NCBI GenBank assembly: GCA_038496445.1
Contig: JALMLS010000502.1
Coordinates: 1-64,000 of the forward strand
Length of the DNA stretch: 64,000 bases
Direction of reading: 5' to 3'
From: Trichosphaerium sp. ATCC 40318
Lineage: Eukaryota > Protista > Tubulinea
The translations under genes were made by a program, and so were the position numbers. The notes beneath the pieces were generated by a model. It saw nothing but the letters and a program-made list of their open reading frames with translations. It did not search any database and was not told the origin of the DNA. Below, piece by piece: positions 1,082-44,036 of the stretch; within the stretch, counting starts at the first letter, position 1, and every line of letters begins with the position of its first letter.

Positions 1082-1557
1082 AGGCGCAGTATGTGAAGCC
1101 TATAAAGGAAATTTCAGGTCTTTGGATATTTAAGTTACTTTCTAAAAAATCACAATTAAGCCTGACTGGGAGATAAACTACGATTCTCATGTAAGGATGG
1201 ATAGTTGAGCAGGAGGTAACATTATTTATATTTTGGGATATTGAGAGCAAGCAATGATAAATTAGGCTTCTTGTTAGGGTACTATGGAAACAACAAAAGG
1301 ATCAATGATCAACATTGCAGTGAATGGTTACAAATTTGAGAGTACGTTAGTTCCAACTTTCCTGACGTTCTAGACCTTTTAGAATTGTGAATATCCAGCT
1401 CCTCTAATAAGGTAAAAAAGTTGCTTAGTGTAGTACAAAAAGGATATGATTAACAACAAAAAAAGTATGTGGTGATCGCGTCTCGTTGCCTTTAAATAGA
1501 AGTTACACTCAAGTTTTATTTTAAACCATGGAGTGCAACAATACTAAACGAAGAAAA

Positions 1558-1633
1558 CACGCTGCAGGTGGGTGCTCTACCACTGAGCTACGGAGAGAAA
1601 ACTCTGCCGGGAGGATTTGAACCTCCGACCTCC
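1558..1633 (-). tRNA. Putative circularly permuted tRNA-Cys(GCA) gene (3' piece precedes 5' piece), or a tRNA pseudogene remnant
   Basis: Minus strand reads GG AGGTC GGAGG TTCAAAT CCTCC CGGCAGAG TTTT CTCTCCG TA GCTC AGTGGTA GAGC A CCCAC CT GCA GC GTG. It has a perfect T-arm and a perfect D-arm, and a 7-bp acceptor stem with one bulged C closed by TTTT. Confidence 0.6.
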
Positions 1634-2246
1634 AAATCATAAAGACCCGATGACATTCTTGCACCACGTCAAAGTAAGTCTTTGACTCAATAGTTATACA
1701 TCTCATTCATCAAAACAAATTTATTGTGGCTTGGACAGTAGTTTCGCTTGTTGTTACAATACTATGTGAGAATTTTCTGTAGTTTATGTGCACGATAATT
1801 CGCGAAGTAAAACAGTGAGTGTTTGCCTAGTGAGAGCAACCAAGCATGATTGCATATATTGCTAACCAAAAGGTTTTCTGACATTTTTCTTTACATTTCT
1901 TATTGCCACGTGTTATGTGAAGCTCATGAGAAGAAAGGCGGATATCTTGGCAACTATGCAAATAGAAGTTAGTGATCGTACCTTAAAGCAGGACATATTT
2001 CTAAGATATCCTGTACTAGTTCAAACGCAACATGTTCCTTCTTTCGAGAGCTAACCCAACCGCATTTACAAAGGTTCTCCATGTGGATATGAGGCGACAT
2101 CAGAATTTTGACGACTTTGCCGAAGGCTGAAAAGAATTAAAGTCCACAACTTTGTACAGTACAGCGTTTTTTATTTTTGACAAAGGTTGAAATCTGAGTT
2201 TTTTTTGTTTTTCCATGACGAGTCTCTAGCGTTTTGAGTCGCGACT

Positions 2247-4859
2247 TTACAAATCATCAGGATCTAGGTAACCCATTGTTGGATCATCTTCTTCTTCTTT
2301 GTGTGTGAAAATAGCTTGATACTTTGATCCAGGACAAGGTACTTTCAAACCAAGATCCTTTGAGAAATTCTTTATAACACTCTGAAGTGAACTGCATTTT
2401 GCTTTTCCGATTTGGTACTTTCCTCCTGGCGAGTGCTGTACACGGAAGTGGTTAACTTTCACCTCTTTTTTCTTACCACTCTTTGCTTTTGCAGATATTG
2501 CATAAGAACCTGGGTCACGTGAACTAAACCTGACCAAATACGTTCCTGAAAAAAAACTTGTGAATATTCAAGAATAAAATAAGAAAACTGTTGGTTACCT
2601 GTTCTAGAAGCTCCTTTTAAAAGTTTTTCTGTTTGACCAGATGAAATATCTCCGTGAAACCACTCTTCTGATAAAACACTACGAACCTAAAAGCACACTA
2701 TGGTCAATAAACATTCTTCGAATGAAACTTTGATTTTTTTTAAGGTTTTTTTAACCTTGCTCCTGCACGTACAGTGTCTAGTGTTTCTTTACCATTAAGA
2801 GGTCCAAACCATTGTAGGAATCTATAAAAACTATCCATGGTAACTTCATCATCCTTGGCTACCAGGAATTAATGTTACAAGCATCAAAAAAAAAAAAAGC
2901 ATTTCTTTGCTTCAATAAAAAACAGTACCTAACAACATCTCCAAGCAAGCCGTCATCTCCTCATTCACCAACTCTTTACCCAGAAATTTTGTAAATTTTG
3001 CAATAAATTCATCCCACGTGACCTCTGTCTAAACGAAACGACGCATAAGTAAAACTCAAGAAAACTTTTTGGATTTGTTTTTAAAAACTGTTCTTGCTTT
3101 ACCTCTTCTTTGAAGTATTTCTTCCAAAACCTGATACCACGTTTATCTTTTAATGTCCCTTCAATCACAATACTCTCAAAATCATCCAGAATCTAATTAA
3201 AATCATTTTAGCACGTAGGACCAATTAAATTCGAAGAAATTAATTGTAAATAAAAAAAATTTCGTAACGTACGTCTTGGAATGATGGCCTGTTCTCTGGG
3301 TTAGCATCCCAGCCTATTACAATTCAGTTAGTACATGAACCTGCACAAAAAGCCAAAAGGGTTTTCAAGCTTTTTTTTAACGTACAAGCTTCCAATATCT
3401 TTTTGAGTGTTGGTGGGCAGTTAGCAGGTATAACAGGGCGCTTATGCTCTTGACATACAGCCTGTACCATAGAAGAGTATGTTTCGATTTCAGGGAACGG
3501 ATCAGAACCAGTTAAAATCTCCCATAAGACCATACCGTAACTGTATAAATCGCACTTTTCATTATACCTAAAAACAAAAAATGTTAATTACCAATACTTT
3601 ACTCACAGCAATCAAAACGTACGATTCATTCTGTAAGACCTCAGGTGCGATCCATAGTGGTGTACCAACGGTTCCATACGCTGCAGGATCATCTCCTTGA
3701 GCTTTAACATGACTTAGACCGAAATCAGCCTAAAATTCTATTACAACTGTTCACTGCCAATCACAAGCAAAAAAAAAAAGAAAAACACAATTGTTCGGCT
3801 TTATCATAAATAATTTATCTTCAACGTACAACTTTAACGCGACCATCTTCATCCACCAATAAATTAGGTGTCTTCAAATCCCTAGAAGAAAACACGTGAA
3901 CAACGGCAAACGTTTGACAGCAAAAAAAAACAATTTGTTTTTTTATGTTAATTATTCAGATAAATCCTTCTGCGCAGCACAAACAAAGCGGTTTTTGATG
4001 ATCGTGAGCTCAAAAAAAAATTAGGTGAATTGTGATCAACCTACCTGTGAATGGTGACAGGGTCTGTGTTATGTAAGCAGTTCATTCCTTGTGCTGCCTG
4101 TCTAGCCATGTCCATACGTTGAGCAAACGTTAACTTTTTTTTTTCCCTTTTAAGTACTTTGCGAACAGAGCCCTGATAGTTTTAAACGCGTCAGGAATAA
4201 TATTTTACCAGATAGCCGTAAAGTGAAAGAAAAAAAAAACTGCAAAAACGTTTATCGGTCAGAAACGACGCTAAATTTTAGTTGAAGTTGGTAAAAACGC
4301 CATGAGATGGTTTATATCTACCTTACGCATGAGTTCTGTGACTATCATTAAATCCCCTACTTCAGTACAAGCCCCCATAAATAATAATACGTTGGGTGTT
4401 TTAGATTACTACGTAATATCGTTAGTCCCGTTTAGAGCATTTTTAATAATGACATGCCTGAAAAGCGCTATTTCTTTTCTGAATGCATCTAATGTGTTCT
4501 GATTTGGATCCTGTATTATTAGGCGCTTAACAGCGACGTCCTTGCCGTGAAGTGTACCCTCAAACACCTCACCAAATGTACCAACACCTAGTTTTTTACC
4601 CATTGTGATGTCACTCTTGCCTATTTCGAATCTTGAAGCCATTAGAAGCAATTAGCGGTGATCGTGTACTTTTGTAGTTGTTTCTCGAATTCAGCCCTCT
4701 CCTCTGACGTAGCTTCTCTCTCTTGCACCCCGCCTTTTGCTATACTAGAAACACTCGCTGAACCGCGAATATTAACCTACAATTGAATTAGACATACAAA
4801 TACGCTTAGGAGTATCATCGTGCCTTTTTTTTTCTAGAATGAGGGCCGGAAGCTGCCAT
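2247..4859 (-). CDS. SHK-family protein kinase (TKL kinase domain + C-terminal SH2 domain), about 13 exons
   Basis: Kinase motifs LGVGTFGEV, VAVK, IHRDLKTPNLL, DFG, GTPLWIAPE, DLYSYGMVLWE. SH2 motifs WFHG and TYLVRFSSRDPGSYAIS. This is the Dictyostelium Shk architecture. Two GC-AG introns and one apparent 1-nt deletion near 4395. Confidence 0.9.
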
Positions 4860-5129: not shown

Positions 5130-8100
5130 CTCTAGAAACATAAGGTTTTTACTTGTTACACTTTGTACAGCCCATTAAAAAAAAAAGAGTTTTGATGAAA
5201 TTTTTTTTTCTTTTTTTTTTTCTTTTTAGGTAGTTTGGTATTGTTTGTTGGTGTGTGGTACATGAATCTATATCCTTGTCCTTATTACCAATAGTAAACG
5301 TAACAGACCTATCAGGTCTGCTTGTTACTTGTCCTGGAGCACTCCATAATGACCCAGACGTTGGTCTAGAAACTCTTGGAGAAACGTCAAAAATGCCTAT
5401 CCGTCTGTCGCTCAACTCGCCCGGTTTTGCCGCCTATACATGTCATTAGAGTCTCCAATTGTATAATCAACAGTACCTGTACGGATATGCTAACAGCAGG
5501 AGCATTAAAGTCCCTATTGTCGCATTTAAGCATCGTCTGTTTAAGTCGTCTTCTGGGTGTTCTCCAGCTGAAAGTGATTGCTCCGTTGTGTGTAAAATCA
5601 GCGTCTTGGAGATGCTCATCTGATCGAAGAAGGTAGGCTACTTGTGTACATATTACAGCACTAGGTTTCCCGTTTGTGTTATTAGTACGGTTTCGAGAAG
5701 CAGGAAGTGTTGTTGCTATTAATTGCTTTGTTCCTGGTGCGATTTTAGTTGGTGGCGCTTGTGTCCACGTCTCGCCTTCGCTTCCAGTTGTAAGCTTTAA
5801 TCTGTGTAGGTAACACTTTGTAGTATTATTAATCTCAATGACAGCAGTGCGTCGCTTCGCCTAAGAACATTAAGAGACCGTCAAAATACATATTACTTGA
5901 AAAGGCAAAAAAAAAACGTACCAACAGACGTTGTTTAGTCTCTTCGTACGTCTCCTCTACTTCTTCTGGTTCTTCCATGGATATATTGTTAATCAAATCA
6001 GCCTCTAGATCGCCCATAATTTTGATTAAGTGCTTCAAGCCGTGAATGTACTCTGTATCTATACAAGGAGGATCCACTCGCCAAGTGTGAGCTAAATATC
6101 GAGAAAAAAAAATTAGTCCGCTTCGCTTTGTGTCGTTTTACGGTCACGTGACCACGTGGTAAGCGTAAATTAAGTATGATTTAATGTAAAAAAATTACTT
6201 ACCAAAATCTACAATCTTGACTAAAACATTCCCAGGTACATCAACACCACTAGACGCATCATAGATAAATAGAATAGAGCTTCCAATAAAAGAAAAATCA
6301 GTTTGTTTTTGAAACCACTTTAAAATCTGCTTTACTGGTCCAATCATTGCTTGCAGTGTCTTTATCCTTGCTTTACCACCAGGCGTATTTGTGACATACT
6401 GTAAAAATGCTGGTTTGATCTGTACAGGTTTGAGAGAAACACCCCAAGGCTTATCTCTCTTTATATAGTCTTTTATATCCGTTTGCCAAACTTTCATACC
6501 ACAAATACGGAATCCAAGGCTAGACGATGTACTGTATGAATCAACAGCATTCAAATACCCCTTCTTTATAAACCCAGCTGTATGATCAGCTGATCTCCTT
6601 CCCACTAAAAAAAAAATTAAAAATGTCACGTGAGGGCAGAACAATAGTTTTCTTTAGATTTCCTTCTTTTTTTTTCGACAATAAAAAAAACTTTGCCTCC
6701 TGGAATGAATTCGTTACTTACTCTTTATATCCATTATACATGGCTTGTCGTAACCATAAGTAAGATCTTCCATTATAATATACTGTAAGGAACCGGCTTG
6801 AGGGTCATTTATAACAGTACGACCATCAAACTTTGGAAAAAAACTTGGCGTATCATTAGGCATATTTCTTAAACCTTCATAGAACGTCCACTCCCTACAA
6901 GCTGTTAAAATCCGCTGCCGATAGGCACAAAAAGAAACAGAAACACACTACAAAAAAACACAAACGAATCATTACTACACAACCAGAAGCGAAATAACTA
7001 CACCTCAAGCATGGAAATAGAAAAGAAAAGCTTCTATTGTGAAGAAAAAATTGGTTTCAGGTTTTTTGGCGCCCTTCGGATCGTTTCGGGTCACGTGCCT
7101 TTTTGACCATGGTTTAAGAATCTTATCACCCATTTTAAGTATCCCTCCTATTTTTCCATTACCTTTATGCCCTGCAACCTGGTTTTGAAACTGTTGAATA
7201 TTATCTTGAACAAGAACAGGCATAGGATCTGCGCAACGCATAAGTGCACGGAGTATTCCCATTTCAAACACCCGTTGCATCCTTGGATCAGAAAGACCCG
7301 CTTTAATAAATTCCTAAAGTAGTTTTAGATGTAAAAGAACAGAGTAAACAATAACAAGTATGAAAAGGGATCAAGTTTTTTGCTCATGTTTTTTTTGATT
7401 TTTCTTCTTTTTTTTTTCGGTATTAATTTACCTCTAAACCAACTTTATCGAGTTCCTTATTATGCCCAACTTTATCTACAATACCATCTCCAGCAGAAGA
7501 AAAATTAACAGCTATAGAACGTGATCTTTGGTTTGGTTTGTTTCCTTGAGGTTCGATACTTGGAGGGTTGTGATTAAGTCTGTATATCAGTTCAAAAACC
7601 TCGTGACGGTGTAAAAAACCCTTATCAGAGCGATCCATCATTTTGAAGGTAAATGTCAATTTTTCCTCAGGTGTCCCTTTTGAAAAGGTAGCATAGCCTT
7701 TAATATAATCCTTATACGTAAGCATATCATCCTGGGTATGTAAAAATGCAAAAAACCTAAATGACAAAACATAAGAACACCAACAAGACAACAAACACAA
7801 AAAAAAAAAAAAGAAAAAAAATCAAAAAAAAAAGACTTGAAAGGAAAAAACGCACATGTTCTCCCAAAAACGCTTAGATGCACCATTTAGTCTCAAATTC
7901 TCTTCTACAAACTCAGCACCACTTATCGTCCCTTAAAAAAACCGGTTAAACAAAGAAAGACTAGCAGTCTAGTCATTTTGTGATACACTAAATAGTGAGC
8001 ACGTGCGGTAAAGTTTATGTCTTTTGTGACTTTTTTACTTTATGAGTGTTTATGGGAACGCAAAAAATGACTTGTTTTATTCAAACAATAGGCAGTTTTA

Positions 8101-8779: not shown

Positions 8780-10114
8780 TTACGCAAAGAGATCAATGAT
8801 CTTTGTCTTCTTCCTTTTCTGAGGAGCAAACATTTCACGTTTTATAGGCTTAAACTCTCCAACATCCTCCTCTCTTACAAGAAGGCCTTCACCAAAGTAT
8901 CCTCCATCAAACCAACCGATCATAGACCTAGAAAAAACCACATCAGTACCAGACAATAATAGTAAAAAAAAAAGAAAAAAAAAAAGAAAAAAAAATTGAT
9001 GAAAAGACAAGCTTACACAGTATCAAATGGTCCATGAAGATCATCCTTTCCTTCCCATTTATACTCCCACCTACGTTTATCCTCTTCTAAAGGTATCTCA
9101 TCATCTCTTTTAACCTTTGAAGCGAGCTTCTCCTTTACATCAGCGTAGATATCTTACACCCAGTCAAGGAGAAAAAAAAAGAATAATCGCTGCTGCGATA
9201 AAATGCCTTGAAGGATACCAGGAAAACCCGACTGAATCAAGAGGTCTGCAGCCTCTATGAGCGTATCAAAACTACTAGTTCCTTTATCTGAAGAAGAAGT
9301 ATCCTTTAATCTTCTTATAGCCATGAGAACATTCTCTCTAGGCTGTAAGATATCCAACACTGTAATCATTGCTTTATCAATCTCATTCTTTGTTTTTCTT
9401 CTTTCTTGCAACTCCTTTAAAAATGTATCTTCCTCCATCTCATCATTGTCTCCATCGTCTTCCTACGATTTATAACAGTTAGACGGCTGTACCCTTGTCT
9501 TCAAGAGTTTTTATTTTTGTACCTCCTCGTCATCACTATCGCCGCGTTGTTCCTTTGTCAGAGAGGCTAGCCATGGATCTTCGTCTTCTTTTTTGTTCCT
9601 GCCAAATACAAAAAATCCGTTATCATCAAAATTACCTGCAAATGGGCGTCAGACACTGCTGACTTGATAATTTTGATAACAGACGCGTGAATTACAGTTG
9701 CTTGTGCTGAATAAAAAAATAACGTACCTTCCTTCAAATCTCCATCGTCAATCTCTAGGTTGGGTTAGAGATAATGTTTTACGGCTTATGTGACGTACTG
9801 AAGCTTTCAACTTTTTCTTGTTTATCATCAAACCTACAAATTACTGTTACTTGCGCTCACTTGATGGATATAGAGCGCAAAACATACCTTTTGGGAGCAG
9901 GAGCGTCTGATACTACCAATTTAGAGTTTTTACGCCGTTTTAGCGCTGGTAAGTCGAAATCATCAAGAGCCGCTTCTCTTCGTCGTTTTTTTTTTTCGCG
10001 AATGAGTTCTGGTACACCCTTCGCCTTTACTTTATCGTAAACGTCTCCTAATGCTTCACTAGGGTCATAATCCTTTTCTTCATCATCTAAATCAAATGTC
10101 ACTTGCTTTGCCAT
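8780..10114 (-). CDS. CD2BP2: CD2BP2/Lin1 (U5 snRNP 52K) GYF-domain protein
   Basis: KEGNFDDNGFFVF...EDPWL, LQPRENVLMAIRRL, and a C-terminal GYF domain WEYKWE...HGPF...MIGWFDGGYF. Confidence 0.9.
9153..9218 (-). other. U12-type (minor spliceosome) GT-AG intron in CD2BP2
   Basis: Donor GTATCCTTC and branch site TTCTCCTTGAC about 10 nt upstream of the acceptor AG, with no polypyrimidine tract after the branch site. Removal keeps the reading frame (FP D IYA). Confidence 0.8.
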
Positions 10115-28412: not shown

Positions 28413-29387
28413 TTGTATCAAGGTGTTTTGGAAGTTTTGAAGTGCTACAATGTGGTACAGCTGCCATACGATGTTCAAAGAGTTATATGCAGCTACTCCG
28501 CTGAGGTGTTTTCTAAATATCCTTGTCTATCAAAGAAAGCAGCTTTAGCAACACATTATGATGCCGAACTGAAGAAAAACGGAGAATGGTTGACTTGGCA
28601 TGAAAATGGCCGTTTGAAAAAAAAATGTTGGATGAAAAAAGGACTAATTATTGGTTCATACACAGAGTGGTATCCAAGCGGAAAGGTACTGAAACAAGGC
28701 CGCATAAAAGGGAATAATAAGGAAGAATGGAAGACATGGTTCGAGAACGGAGCTATCAACGCACACGTCACAATAAATGACGGCCTAAAAGTAACTCAAA
28801 AATGGCATGAAAATGGAAATAAACACATGCTTTATAGTCAGTTGAATACACAACTTCATGGAGATTTTAAACAATGGCATTCTAATGGATCATTGTTTCT
28901 TTATTGTCAAATGGAACAAGGCATTGAAGTAGGCGACTGGCAAATGTGGCACGACAATGGAAAACCAAATGTTGTTTGTTCAAAAAAAGATGGTATGGAG
29001 TGTGGAGAGTATAGACAATGGTATAGGAATGGACAAATACATGTAAAGTGTAGAATGAATAATGATAGAGTTGAAGGAGAGTACACTGAATGGTACAAGA
29101 ACGGACAACAGAAACTGATCTATTTCATTCAGAACAGTCAAAGGGAGAGGGAATTTAGAAGGTGGCATATCGACCGTCAAAGTGCAAATCCTGAAGAAGG
29201 AACATCTAAGGAGTATGACTACGATGACATACACTTACGCATGTACAGATACACTGAGGATGGTGAATTCAAAGGAGAGTTCAAGGAATGGTATAGAAAC
29301 GGACAGTTGTACAAGCATGGCCATATCGTGGATGGTAAATTCAAGGTGGAAGTGTGGAATGAGTTAGGAAACCTAATTCTCGGATAA
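28413..29387 (+). CDS. MORN-variant (MORN_2/YwqK-like) repeat protein with an N-terminal F-box-like motif; 5' end unresolved
   Basis: About 9-10 repeats of G.(Y/W)..W(Y/H).NGQ in one long exon. LPYDVQRVICSY lies near the N-terminus. Confidence 0.8.
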   Translation: MYQGVLEVLKCYNVVQLPYDVQRVICSYSAEVFSKYPCLSKKAALATHYDAELKKNGEWLTWHENGRLKKKCWMKKGLIIGSYTEWYPSGKVLKQGRIKGNNKEEWKTWFENGAINAHVTINDGLKVTQKWHENGNKHMLYSQLNTQLHGDFKQWHSNGSLFLYCQMEQGIEVGDWQMWHDNGKPNVVCSKKDGMECGEYRQWYRNGQIHVKCRMNNDRVEGEYTEWYKNGQQKLIYFIQNSQREREFRRWHIDRQSANPEEGTSKEYDYDDIHLRMYRYTEDGEFKGEFKEWYRNGQLYKHGHIVDGKFKVEVWNELGNLILG

Positions 29388-39610: not shown

Positions 39611-41182
39611 ATGTACGATCCAGATAATAATCCAGGTTAGATGAGTTTGTTTGAATGATATATAGCGTTAATATATTTTATTCAAAGCGATTGTTATTGA
39701 CAGTGGTGCAAGCGTGACAAAGGTCGGTTTTGCGTCCACTGATGGGCCTAAAGCAGAATTTCCTTCTGTAGTGGGACAACCTGAACAAATAAACACGCAT
39801 GGCGCCAAAGGTAAGCGTGGTAATGCCAACACACTATATTTTATCCGTTTTGAGTTCGCTCAAAGTATTTTTGCTTACAAATGTGCTTACAGTGCGCTCT
39901 TATGTTGGTTCGGATGCACTGGCACTACTACCAGACATTGGAGTGAACTATCCTATGGAACACAACTCAGTAACGGATTGGGATGCCTTTGAAAAAATCT
40001 ATCATCACGCTTTCTACAAATCCCTTTGCGTTTCTCCTGAAGAACGCCCAGTGTTCGTGTTAGATACACCTGGTATGCCTCTCTCGTACAGGTACTCATG
40101 AAGTCTCATAACAACCTCAAACAGCTGTTTTATGCATGTTTTGTAAACAAGTGTTTTGTTTTTTGGTGTTTGCAAACATAGCTCCAATGCAAGTCAGTAC
40201 TTCGATTGAATTGGTTCAACAGTTGTTAAATTTCAATTTTTATATTTTATCTTGGATGTTTAATCACGTGTACTCTTGTAGAGAAAAGATAACAGAGATA
40301 TTAATGGAAACTTTTGGTGTACAAGCAATGTATATTGCTTTTAAAGGTCGTACAGCATTTAGTGGGTATGGTGGTGGAGATGGTTTAGTATTACATTGTG
40401 GTGCTGGAGGAACACATACGTTCCCAAGCAATTCAGGATACTTGGTTGAGAGTGCTATAAAGAGATTGAATGTCGGAGGAAATGACTTGACAATGTATTT
40501 GATGAAGATGTTAAGTCAGAGTGGTAAGTGTACCTCTATCGATAGAAAGAGTTTAGAGGATATAAAGCACAAGTTTTGTACTGTTGCTCCTTCGAGTTGC
40601 GAGTCTAAAATAGATGCTAAACCGAAGGAATATGAGTTACCTAATGGTGAAAAAATAATGATAAAAAATGAACAGTTTCTTTGTGCTGAAGCACTTTTTG
40701 ATCCTAGTTTGGTCGGATCAGATTCTAAAGGTATTCATCATCTTATATTTGATGCAATTGATTCTTGTCCTCTTGATTTACAGAAGGTACCAATCAGCAT
40801 TGAACAAATCTCGAAAAAACCAAGAAAAGTAAGTGTGGACTCATCAGTTTATGTAGGATTTGTACAACAGCATTATCCTTTCTGGTGGTGTTTCTCTAGT
40901 TCCTGGTATTGCAAAAAGGATCGTTTCAGAGGTGTCTAAGCTTGCACCTTCTAAAGCAAATGTGAGCGTGGTAGCTTTGGAACAAAGACAATTATTACCT
41001 TGGCGTGGTGGTTCAGTTGATGCTTCTTTGTCAACATTTCAACAAAGCTGGTAAGATGACATATATTTTTTTTCCTTATACTGTGCTTACATTGAATGAA
41101 TGGTTGTAGGTTTGAAAAAAAGGATTATCTTGAATATGGCGCATCATATGTTCACACAGTTTGTGGATTTAAGATGGTGTAG
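39611..41182 (+). CDS. Divergent actin-family protein
   Basis: IVIDSGASVTKVGFA...FPSVVG, REKITEILMETFGV, YELPNGE, CAEALFDPS, LYNSIILSGG, WRGGS. Confidence 0.92.
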
Positions 41183-41296: not shown

Positions 41297-43471
41297 TTAG
41301 ACTGGTACAAATTTCCACATTGAACTGTAGCCAGAATGTCCACTGTACTGTGCACGGGTTTGTGCATCAGGTTGTTCAATATGAATACGAGCAGAAGACT
41401 TGAAGCGATTGTAAATGTAAAAATGATATGGACTGTTTGTGCCTATAAGTTGCCATAAAGCGCTATTAGGAGCATGACCAGTTTGTACAAAACCTGTGTT
41501 ATCGTGAACATGAAGAATCCTTCCTGTATCCAAATTTATCATCTGAAAAAAACGAGGATTATCAGCGATTGGCTTAAACTCCCAAGTAGCACTTAAGTCC
41601 CGGATATTCGCAACTGATGCAGTTGAAGTCCTTGCATCGTATAAGTAGTTTGGTCCTGGCTGTTGACTCTCACATTGGTAGGTATTAGCTGGTGTTTGAT
41701 TCACAAGAAACCAATGAAACAGAGTTCCAAAATTCGAAGTTGTGTATTGTACACGACCTTGAGAATCAAGACTATTCCTGTGCATTCTTCCTGGTCTTTT
41801 CCTGTTTTTGATTATATGCCAGCCTGTACTCCAAGCATGTGGTATTTTCTCCCATTGTGCCATAGTTGGTACTTGATCCATTTGAACAAATCCAGTAGCT
41901 TCCTGTAAGTGTACCATACGTCCAGTGAAAACGTTTGTAATAATATGCCATTGAGAAGATCCGATTCTTTCAATTGTGAACATTGATGCACTGTTACGTG
42001 TTGTACTATATCCTAGACCTTTACCTAACCCGTTATCACGGAGGTATGTGTTCTCCTTCCATCGTGATTGGATGTAGTATCTTCTACCATTTATGACAGG
42101 GTGAGCTGGGATTGATTTTATCAAAAAAGTTTCTTGAGTTCTGAGGCCTGTTATAGTTTGAGTTGTTTGTCCGTTTGAGATGACACGTTTACTAAATCCG
42201 TCCCAATAATATACGTTTAATTGAGCAGTATTACCAGGTATGTTCCTTACTGTAAAGGAGGAGCTTACAGTATCGCACAAGTTGTTGATGTTTTGTTTTG
42301 CCCACATCCTTTCACGTCCGTTTGTGAAGGTATGACCTCCTCTGCCATGAGAATTGACTGTTTCTACGTGCATGTTTGACAGTAATTCGTTTGTCATCTT
42401 ATAAACTTGACCTTTAAGATTAGGTGTCCATGGGGAGAGCCTCGAACAGGAACCATATGTCGGATCGTCAGAGTCAGTGTTAAAAATGTTCCACATTAGA
42501 GCAAACCCAAGAGCGGGTGTTCTTCCATCGTTCTTTGAAACACAAAGTCCAGCGACGTAGGCTGTTAGTTGAAGCTTTGCTGCTAGTTGAGGCGTAAGCC
42601 CTTGATCCAAAGCAGTCTTCATATTCCACTCAGAACAGAAATAAGGAACATCACGTGTTATACCAGAAGCACTTTTCACGTCTTCGAAATCACTTTGAGC
42701 ATTCTTCTCATAAATAGACAACGGAGTATATCTCAAATCATTGTACACGTGCAAATCAAACCCTGCAAGTTTACCATTGTTTATAAGTCCAGCGACAGCT
42801 GGTAAAAAACCTCGTAACCTGTGGTCACTAGCTGAGTTCTCAGTAGCGTATCCGCCCGGCATTACCATGGCTTGAGGGTACTCTGAATGTAATCCATCTG
42901 CGAGTCTTTCAAGAGCCGTAGCGTAGTCAGCAAGTGGAATAGTTTGATCCAAGTCAGGTTCATTTATTGCTTGCCAATATGTTATACCCCAGTTACGTAT
43001 TCCTTTGCTTATGAGGAATGCGCTGTTCGGCTTGAAACGCTTTGCAAAGTTCTGACCAATAGCATACCTTAAAACAGTTGTTAAGTCATAGTGTCAACAG
43101 ACTTCGTGTTCAAGGGCACGTGCCCCTCTTATATAAGCGTGGACGTACCAATTATACGTGAGGATAGGTTGGTACGCTGGATAATGACCGTAGTACTCGA
43201 ATGTGAATAGAATGTTTTTTACACCTGAAGCATGGGCTTGTACTACCAAATCATCGTGCGCTGAGGGTACAGGTGCATTGTTTCTCCAATACCAATAAGG
43301 ATAAGCGTTCATTCTAATCATACTAGCGCGAGCTGCTTTAAGAGCGTTAAACTTGTCAGGAGCCACCAAGCCATTTGGGAAGTTGCCACCGCCCGTCAAG
43401 TACGTCGCTTGTTGTAGTGCCATAGCTCCTGAAATGATAAACAAGATGGCAATTATACTTTGTAGAGCCAT
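41297..43471 (-). CDS. Secreted clan GH-A-like glycoside hydrolase with two C-terminal ricin-B-like lectin modules; one intron
   Basis: Signal peptide, WQAINEPD (acid/base), FDLHVY, FCSEWN (nucleophile), and a duplicated Trp-rich C-terminal module (YYIQSRW...AQW...HWFL / YQCESQ...ALW...MWKF). Confidence 0.75.
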
Positions 43472-44036
43472 TGCTTGCTTAGGGAGATACTGTAACAATT
43501 TGATTTATTCATGTGACACGTGATTCGAACTGGCGCTAGTAACGACAGTCGATAATTTTCCATACAGCATGCTGTTAATTCTTTCTATAAAACCCGAAAA
43601 TGCCAGAACGCTAGTTGGGAAATTCGTATTTTATTTAAAATGTTGGCGGGTGAATAGTTCCGCCCATTCGATTCTGAGTTGCAGGTTCTTCATCTAAACC
43701 GATACAACACGCATGATTCTATTTACCTTCCAATTTCGAACAAAGACAGTTGTGTAGGTTGATGTTATGTCATAAATTTTTGTTTATGGTACATCACCTT
43801 TTCTTTCACTTAAGCCCTTTTGTTGTACTGTACACGTGGGCTGTTGCTCGTAAATCACTATCAAACTGTTTTGCTACCCCGTGGGTAGTTACCAACTGTG
43901 TAATAAAATAGGAGCTAGCGCTCTGCATCTTGTTCAACAAAACAGTTTAAAGAGCCTTTGCAAAAAAAGTGAAAACTAGCAAAAATACAAGTTGTTTGTT
44001 TATTTATCTTGCCATGTCCAAGGCAATATTTATAAC

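Follow-up and report, generated by a model that had tools for sequence, protein, structure and literature searches.

On the minus strand of a 64-kb stretch of Trichosphaerium DNA, the whole of which is called the window here, a complete tRNA is encoded in genuinely circularly permuted order, with the break between positions 41 and 42. The permuted tRNA is part of a unit of ~210 nt that is larger than first described and comprises a TATA-like box, a terminal rod, a trailer hairpin and a T7 run. This unit is probably transcribed as one RNA. We lean slightly towards regarding it as a lasting YrlA-like tRNA mimic rather than as the precursor of a working tRNA. The window consists of intron-rich eukaryotic DNA with a GC content of 37.3%; 37.69% were reported for the Trichosphaerium genome (PMC10521059).

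The 3' piece of the tRNA (positions 42-73) occupies 1633-1601, as delimited by sequence, ARAGORN and a constrained fold. It starts at 1633 with G42 and G43 and continues with the variable loop AGGTC, the T arm (1626-1610), the acceptor 3' strand (1609-1602) and the discriminator U73 (1601). A linker of 3 nt (1600-1598), which together with U73 makes up a T4 run, closes the acceptor stem and leads into the 5' piece (positions 1-41; 1597-1558). The latter contains the acceptor 5' strand beginning with C1, the D arm and the anticodon stem-loop with the anticodon GCA at 1565-1563, and ends with G41. All tRNA elements named in the first-pass annotation were located on the minus strand as described there. 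After reordering of the halves, which had been proposed as a check, ARAGORN recognizes a tRNA-Cys(gca) at its default threshold. It does so only via a slipped acceptor/T register; no clean fit of 7 + 5 bp exists without a bulge. The bulged C previously suspected in the acceptor stem is C1606, one extra base in the 3' strand, with which a regular 7-bp acceptor stem stacked on a 5-bp T stem is not formed.

When all junctions from 33 to 45 were scanned, 41/42 was the only one with 5/5 anticodon-stem pairs, in agreement with the junction and the perfect 5-bp stem originally proposed. The two pieces abut there with overlap 0 and gap 0. The canonical 37/38 junction yields 3/5 pairs and was rejected. 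A T loop followed by a D arm occurs once in the 64-kb window and in 0 of 300 window shuffles. ARAGORN detects no colinear tRNA in the 64-kb window, and its tRNA-Stop call on the raw window (1601-1674) was rejected, because it fits poorly and makes use of the real T arm. In the precursor fold, pairing probabilities reach 0.89-0.98 in the T stem and the bulged acceptor stem; the D stem (0.13) and the anticodon stem (~0) pair weakly in the unmodified RNA, which is a limit of fold prediction and also a caution.

A TATA-like box (TATAAC, 1698-1693) lies ~30 nt upstream of the predicted start at ~1667 and may serve as promoter. The 5' leader (1667-1640) is the 5' strand of the terminal rod and pairs with the 3' strand at 1494-1469, extendable to ~20 bp. 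The outer helix of the rod (1667-1662/1474-1469), located just before the T7 run, has pairing probabilities of 0.97-1.0. The duplex between leader and 3' end amounts to -22.1 kcal/mol, a value equalled by 9 of 3000 shuffled tails and by 30 of 10,662 36-mers from the window. Between rod and position 42, a U-rich single strand (1639-1634) is evident from sequence and constrained fold, and a second U-rich single strand, the trailer at 1557-1540, follows position 41. The trailer is succeeded by a hairpin (1539-1502; -14.8 kcal/mol) composed of a 9-bp outer stem (1539-1531/1510-1502) and an inner stem. The T7 run at 1464-1458 is the sole T run longer than four within the unit and the likely Pol III terminator, and a Pol III origin of the entire unit can be inferred. 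The region 1456-1672 folds with z = -3.3. A helix considered at first as the terminal one (1665-1653/1544-1532) has zero probability once the transcript reaches T7 and was replaced by the rod. Spliceosomal back-splicing was rejected from the sequence: A GT is present at the end of the 5' piece, and no AG precedes G42.

Contigs from sequencing runs were compared with positions 900-2500 of the window, whereby run X6 was taken to be RNA by guess. No run covered most of the stretch. Run X6 yielded two contigs on the unit, 1475-1658 and 1475-1656, and no coverage on 900-1474 and 1659-2319; apart from these two, it contained one contig, on the neighbouring gene. Since coverage is confined twice to the predicted transcript, the pattern is that expected from RNA, and an RNA origin of these contigs is probable. 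The contig 1475-1658 spans both TTTT runs. The first-pass annotation had viewed the TTTT directly after position 41 (1557-1554) as a terminator and feared that the TTTT in the linker might stop Pol III. Both runs are read through, and the TTTT behind position 41 is not a terminator, because the contigs run on past it in the direction of the T7 run. Both contigs stop 30 bases beyond the last listed difference, a pattern of merging assembly paths; therefore, the RNA probably continues towards T7. Joints between 41 and 42 were absent from the contigs of four runs, which is weak evidence against splicing, because contigs lose short modified RNAs.

Run X1 yielded a contig (1971-2500) whose start at 1971 bears a template-switch-type adaptor in plus-strand orientation, although the nearest exons are apparently on the minus strand. 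It represents either an antisense RNA or a library artefact, and an 11-base insertion behind 2105 distinguishes it from the window. Elsewhere in the window, a single-exon ORF at 28413-29387 contains MORN-variant repeats (PF07661). MORN-variant repeat proteins are common in giant viruses. A divergent actin-like ORF (PF00022, E 3e-31) is located at 40136-40939. On the minus strand, 41297-42952 and 43094-43498 comprise an ORF of 551 aa without Pfam match and a preceding ORF with a signal-peptide-like start, which together give the impression of a secreted glycoside-hydrolase-like protein with a repeat-rich tail.

One of the two X6 contigs has a single difference from the window. Because it matches 1475-1658 with this one difference, mis-assembly, named at the outset as a circumstance that would overturn the permuted layout, is excluded. 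The other contig departs from it by 16 substitutions, 14 of them listed, and by 7 gap letters, and represents a sister copy, which may be either a paralogue in the same genome or the copy of a related strain. Its sequence was rebuilt from the contig difference table, in which two of the 16 substitutions, close to the contig ends, are not listed. Rejoined, the sister is a tRNA-Tyr(gta) according to ARAGORN. Its anticodon is GUA, its discriminator A73, and its 7-bp acceptor stem with C1-G72 is perfectly paired. In a structural alignment of window copy and sister, the acceptor pairs 2-71 and 4-69 are doubly changed in a compensatory manner, and the unpaired positions 26, 35, 38, 57, 59 and 73 differ. 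No pair in the tRNA body is broken by the substitutions, an outcome reached in 0.26% of trials with nine random substitutions (P ~0.003; slightly conservative, as the real count is 10); no broken pair combined with two double changes is reached in 0.02% (P 0.0002). Substitutions are clustered in the tRNA part (12/69 vs. at most 4/113 in the flanks; Fisher P = 0.002). The sister retains the trailer hairpin: A G-U pair is replaced by G-C there, and the indels spare both stems. In the 3' strand of the acceptor/T helix, each copy contains a single additional base: C1606 in the window and an A in the T stem of the sister, the latter known from one contig of depth 4. Thus, the unit is under structural selection and its identity positions change fast; since compensatory pairs are found and no pair is broken, neither copy appears to decay.

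The anticodon GCA and U73 are the major cysteine determinants (PMC9976931), as had been argued for this locus, although U73 requires the register with the bulge; without it, position 73 is a G and the acceptor stem has three mismatches. GUA, C1-G72 and A73 form the eukaryotic tyrosine determinant set (PMC9976931). Despite GCA and U73, the body of the window copy is tyrosine-type (C1-G72), which suggests that the identity switch proceeded from Tyr to Cys. Window copy and tyrosine-type sister presumably share a recent common ancestor. Such a course resembles anticodon shift or alloacceptor remolding, where a duplicate swaps its anticodon and keeps the body and the flanks of the other isotype (PMC3923123, PMC4783518). 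It differs from these cases in that the unit is permuted, the discriminator is changed, too, and charging is putative.

In the permuted tRNA genes known so far, a bulge-helix-bulge (BHB) motif is the site of cutting, after which ligation produces a circle (PMC3978253). The unit shares several features with those of Cyanidioschyzon merolae, Ostreococcus, Micromonas, the Bigelowiella nucleomorph and Thermofilum pendens: the 3' part precedes the 5' part, a TATA-like box is located upstream and a T run downstream, and the anticodon loop is complete (PMC3978253). Known permuted genes are driven by upstream TATA boxes (PMC3978253), and here, too, TATA-like box and downstream T run enclose a probable single transcript. 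The linker closing the acceptor comprises 1-74 nt in the known genes and 3 nt here, and tRNA-Cys(GCA) is also among the permuted tRNAs of prasinophytes (PMC3978253). By contrast, the break at 41/42, the lack of a BHB motif, the bulged acceptor helix and the non-algal host set the unit apart. The same holds for its leader and trailer, which pair far from the junction in a rod of ~20 bp and are accompanied by an extra hairpin. Junctions known so far are 15/16, 20/21, 37/38, 50/51 and 59/60; none of the 34 permuted tRNA genes compiled there is broken at 41/42, rightly called unfamiliar before (PMC3978253).

The BHB-like helix with 3 of 4 central pairs, initially cited in support of processing, is at chance level (P = 0.16 for random 4-mers of the window). 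At 41/42, three of four central pairs and one of three outer pairs can form, and at every other junction between 33 and 45 at most two of four, so that none of these junctions has a BHB motif above chance. In the sister, 2/4 central pairs would be left, if its leader matches that of the window. Hence, the assignment to the permuted-gene class stands for the order of the pieces and the complete rejoined tRNA, but is not supported for BHB processing and a circular intermediate, since the pairing at 41/42 is at chance level and weaker in the sister and the contigs contain no joint. Known permuted genes yield a circular or joined product, whereas the unit described here is known from sequence and contigs of the unprocessed unit.

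Over the element, the sole match in Rfam is YrlA (RF02553; 29.3 bits, E 0.0028, model positions 24-84 only), at a score below the gathering score of 69 bits. In YrlA RNAs, the acceptor is closed and varies in length, the ends form a long stem, and a fourth hairpin, named 'V', is often present (PMC4201824; 10.1101/312249). In M. smegmatis, YrlA undergoes a cut by RNase P and CCA addition without re-ligation (PMC4201824). The unit shares with YrlA the order of T arm, closed acceptor stem and D arm (PMC4201824; 10.1101/312249), the pairing of 5' and 3' ends in a long stem, an irregular acceptor and a fourth hairpin beside the tRNA core. In contrast to YrlA, the anticodon hairpin follows the D arm (break at 41/42) instead of preceding the variable loop, the signals are of the eukaryotic Pol III type, no adjacent Ro60 gene was seen, and the size is ~210 nt compared to the 114 positions of the YrlA model. 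The Ro60-binding motif GNCGAAN0-1G is absent, and not even GNCGA is found on the minus strand of 1456-1700; for this reason, the unit is YrlA-like in layout and is not filed as a YrlA member.

Viral contigs were scanned for a T loop followed by a D arm. Most matches proved to be tandem tRNAs, and ~20 were lone permuted units. In about 14 of these 20 phage or viral units, a break between 28/29 and 30/31 leaves a stem of 5 bp and an anticodon-like loop of 7 nt, pair counts being inflated, as the best of many junctions was taken. Seven units tested on the YrlA model scored 30-45 bits, and none of 11 viral loci reached its gathering score. The acceptor stems of the seven tested units are irregular. 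A complete 5-bp stem with a 7-nt anticodon-like loop, as in the window, is present in L025 (2975-3025), L032 (5848-5898), L044 (1366-1412), L045 (5026-5076), L055 (331-382), L058 (5257-5303), L073 (2677-2727), L084 (2431-2480), L087 (3368-3417), L102 (near 2775), L107 (near 4317) and L096 (near 4064), all of them below the gathering score, and in L037. Their break lies at or next to the same helical step as here (between pairs 28-42 and 29-41), but on the 5' strand (28/29 or 29/30), so that the break on the 3' strand in the window (41/42) is its mirror image. Leader and trailer are paired as here, and the anticodons are many and different (UCU, UGU, UGG, CAU, GUU, GCC, UUC, UUU and CCC in units broken at 28/29 or 29/30). 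Apart from the D and T consensus used in the search, viral units and window are not alike in sequence. What is called the 'V hairpin' in YrlA-like RNAs may represent an anticodon arm that was retained, a statement not found in PMC4201824 or 10.1101/312249.

Some further observations concern these viral loci. The unit L037:7315-7360 (UUU) is situated in a tRNA cluster beside a colinear tRNA-Lys(UUU), on a contig that is by name a giant-virus MAG, and giant viruses are reported as gene donors to Trichosphaerium. Among the leaders of L025, L032, L045, L090, L096 and L098, several have an ACAGC motif just inside the leader-trailer helix; others end in TACTT, resembling the YUAY motif of YrlA. L102 additionally encodes phage tRNAs with inserts of 60-120 nt near a GOLLD RNA (5134-5329, 4498-4631, 3273-3424, 5548-5707; 9181-9694), and three of these inserts seem to hold a second T-arm-like hairpin. 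A scan of metagenomes for the anticodon arm gave 15 chance matches; as all of them are without T arm, no outside homologue was found.

As a YrlA-like mimic, the unit would be a self-contained, TATA-driven Pol III gene for an RNA of ~210 nt that extends from ~1667 to the T7 run. The ends of this RNA pair as the ~20-bp rod, which would serve as a handle. As folding and conservation in the sister indicate, the rod bears a complete cloverleaf, with the acceptor closed by the short loop and the anticodon stem interrupted at 41/42, together with the trailer hairpin. The tRNA-shaped domain may persist on this handle without cut and re-ligation. Its putative job would be that of a decoy or tether for proteins that recognize tRNAs, i.e. 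synthetases, modification enzymes or anticodon-directed nucleases, and anticodon and acceptor end would set its specificity.

Several observations argue for such a mimic. The contigs are colinear and unprocessed (1475-1658), contain no joints and leave the flanks uncovered. No BHB motif exceeds chance, and the best one weakens in the sister. Both copies have a one-base bulge at different places, which means that pairing is kept and exact tRNA geometry is not. To these, the terminal rod with T7, the only Rfam match and the viral units with their kept anticodon loop can be added. Against the mimic stand the exact fit at 41/42 with its perfect anticodon stem and the concerted difference between GUA/A73 and GCA/U73, which would be expected if the RNAs were charged and perhaps decoding. 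Moreover, the Ro60 motif is missing and any partner protein is putative, and among the supporting points the sister bulge comes from one contig of depth 4 and the absence of joints carries little weight. A TROVE-domain protein of 922 aa, by its length a poor fit to Ro60, is listed in the gene tables of Trichosphaerium along with an RtcB-family and a Thg1-like protein (PMC10521059), and all three are leads only.

Possible, although doubtful, is the broader idea that the amoeba makes working tRNAs by a BHB-independent cut-and-join, or with the nick left, at 41/42, guided by the rod, and that the locus reflects a recent Tyr-to-Cys switch. Its first version, a working permuted tRNA-Cys(GCA), is on the unlikely side and still the most credible of the individual alternatives. 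According to it, a cut at 41/42 without BHB would be followed by ligation (RtcB-type or other), RNase P and tRNase Z would open the acceptor loop, CCA would be added, and the gene would be remolded from a permuted tRNA-Tyr gene. The exact, non-overlapping fit at 41/42, the Cys and Tyr calls of ARAGORN for the two rejoined copies, the concerted change of positions 35 and 73 and the two compensatory acceptor pairs without any broken pair all agree with this proposal. So do the U-rich single strands flanking both cut points, the TATA box and T run, which permuted tRNA genes of algae possess as well, and the RtcB-family and Thg1-like proteins listed for Trichosphaerium. However, a BHB motif is absent, and we know of no nuclease that cuts at such a BHB-free site. 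The acceptor stem is bulged, which is rare among working nuclear tRNAs, and the joint is missing from the contigs. Furthermore, phage YrlA-like RNAs are equally complete and have irregular acceptor stems; therefore, a working tRNA cannot be deduced from the retention of an anticodon loop.

It is improbable that a permuted tRNA-Tyr unit was duplicated and that the transcribed copy is now decaying as a pseudogene or SINE-like element, with GCA and U73 as chance mutations. The flanks nearly identical to those of the Tyr sister (at most 4 substitutions per 113 nt) and the tyrosine determinant C1-G72 would suit a duplicate, the bulge would be a defect and U73 merely the first base of a T run. Yet none of the nine substitutions in the tRNA body breaks a pair, four of them make up the two compensatory pairs, and substitutions are concentrated in the tRNA part instead of being spread evenly over the unit. 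In addition, the contig depth is near that of the sister (5.6 vs. 4.2), which is a weak argument.

Even less probable is a working tRNA in two pieces, comparable to two-piece tmRNA, whose acceptor would be opened and supplied with CCA, whose ends would be trimmed by exonucleases up to the helix and whose nick at 41/42 would stay unsealed. It would require neither BHB nor ligase, and the unpaired U-rich flanks at both break points would be in place for it. On the other hand, only 2 bp (27-43 and 28-42) would hold the pieces together at that end, the pairs of the anticodon stem are predicted with a probability near zero when the unmodified precursor is folded, the acceptor is bulged and the contigs represent the untrimmed unit. 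Chance resemblance or an assembly artefact can be practically dismissed in view of the shuffles, of which none produced the layout, of the independent contig with one difference from it and of the sister copy with the same layout.

In the literature searched, no report was found on permuted tRNA genes in Amoebozoa or on Y-like RNAs in amoebae, and tRNA look-alikes of the YrlA kind were found described only for bacteria and phages; for such a host, both leading readings are thus without report. If the unit matures, there would be a tRNA splicing route without BHB, and permuted tRNA genes would no longer be confined to algae and one archaeon. The Cys/Tyr sister pair provides a natural experiment, in which anticodon and discriminator differ on a common scaffold. 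If the unit is a mimic, it would represent a eukaryotic nuclear family of YrlA-like look-alikes that lack the Ro60 motif and carry real anticodons changing fast between copies. In that case, the purpose of tRNA mimicry in Y-like RNAs would become testable in a eukaryote.
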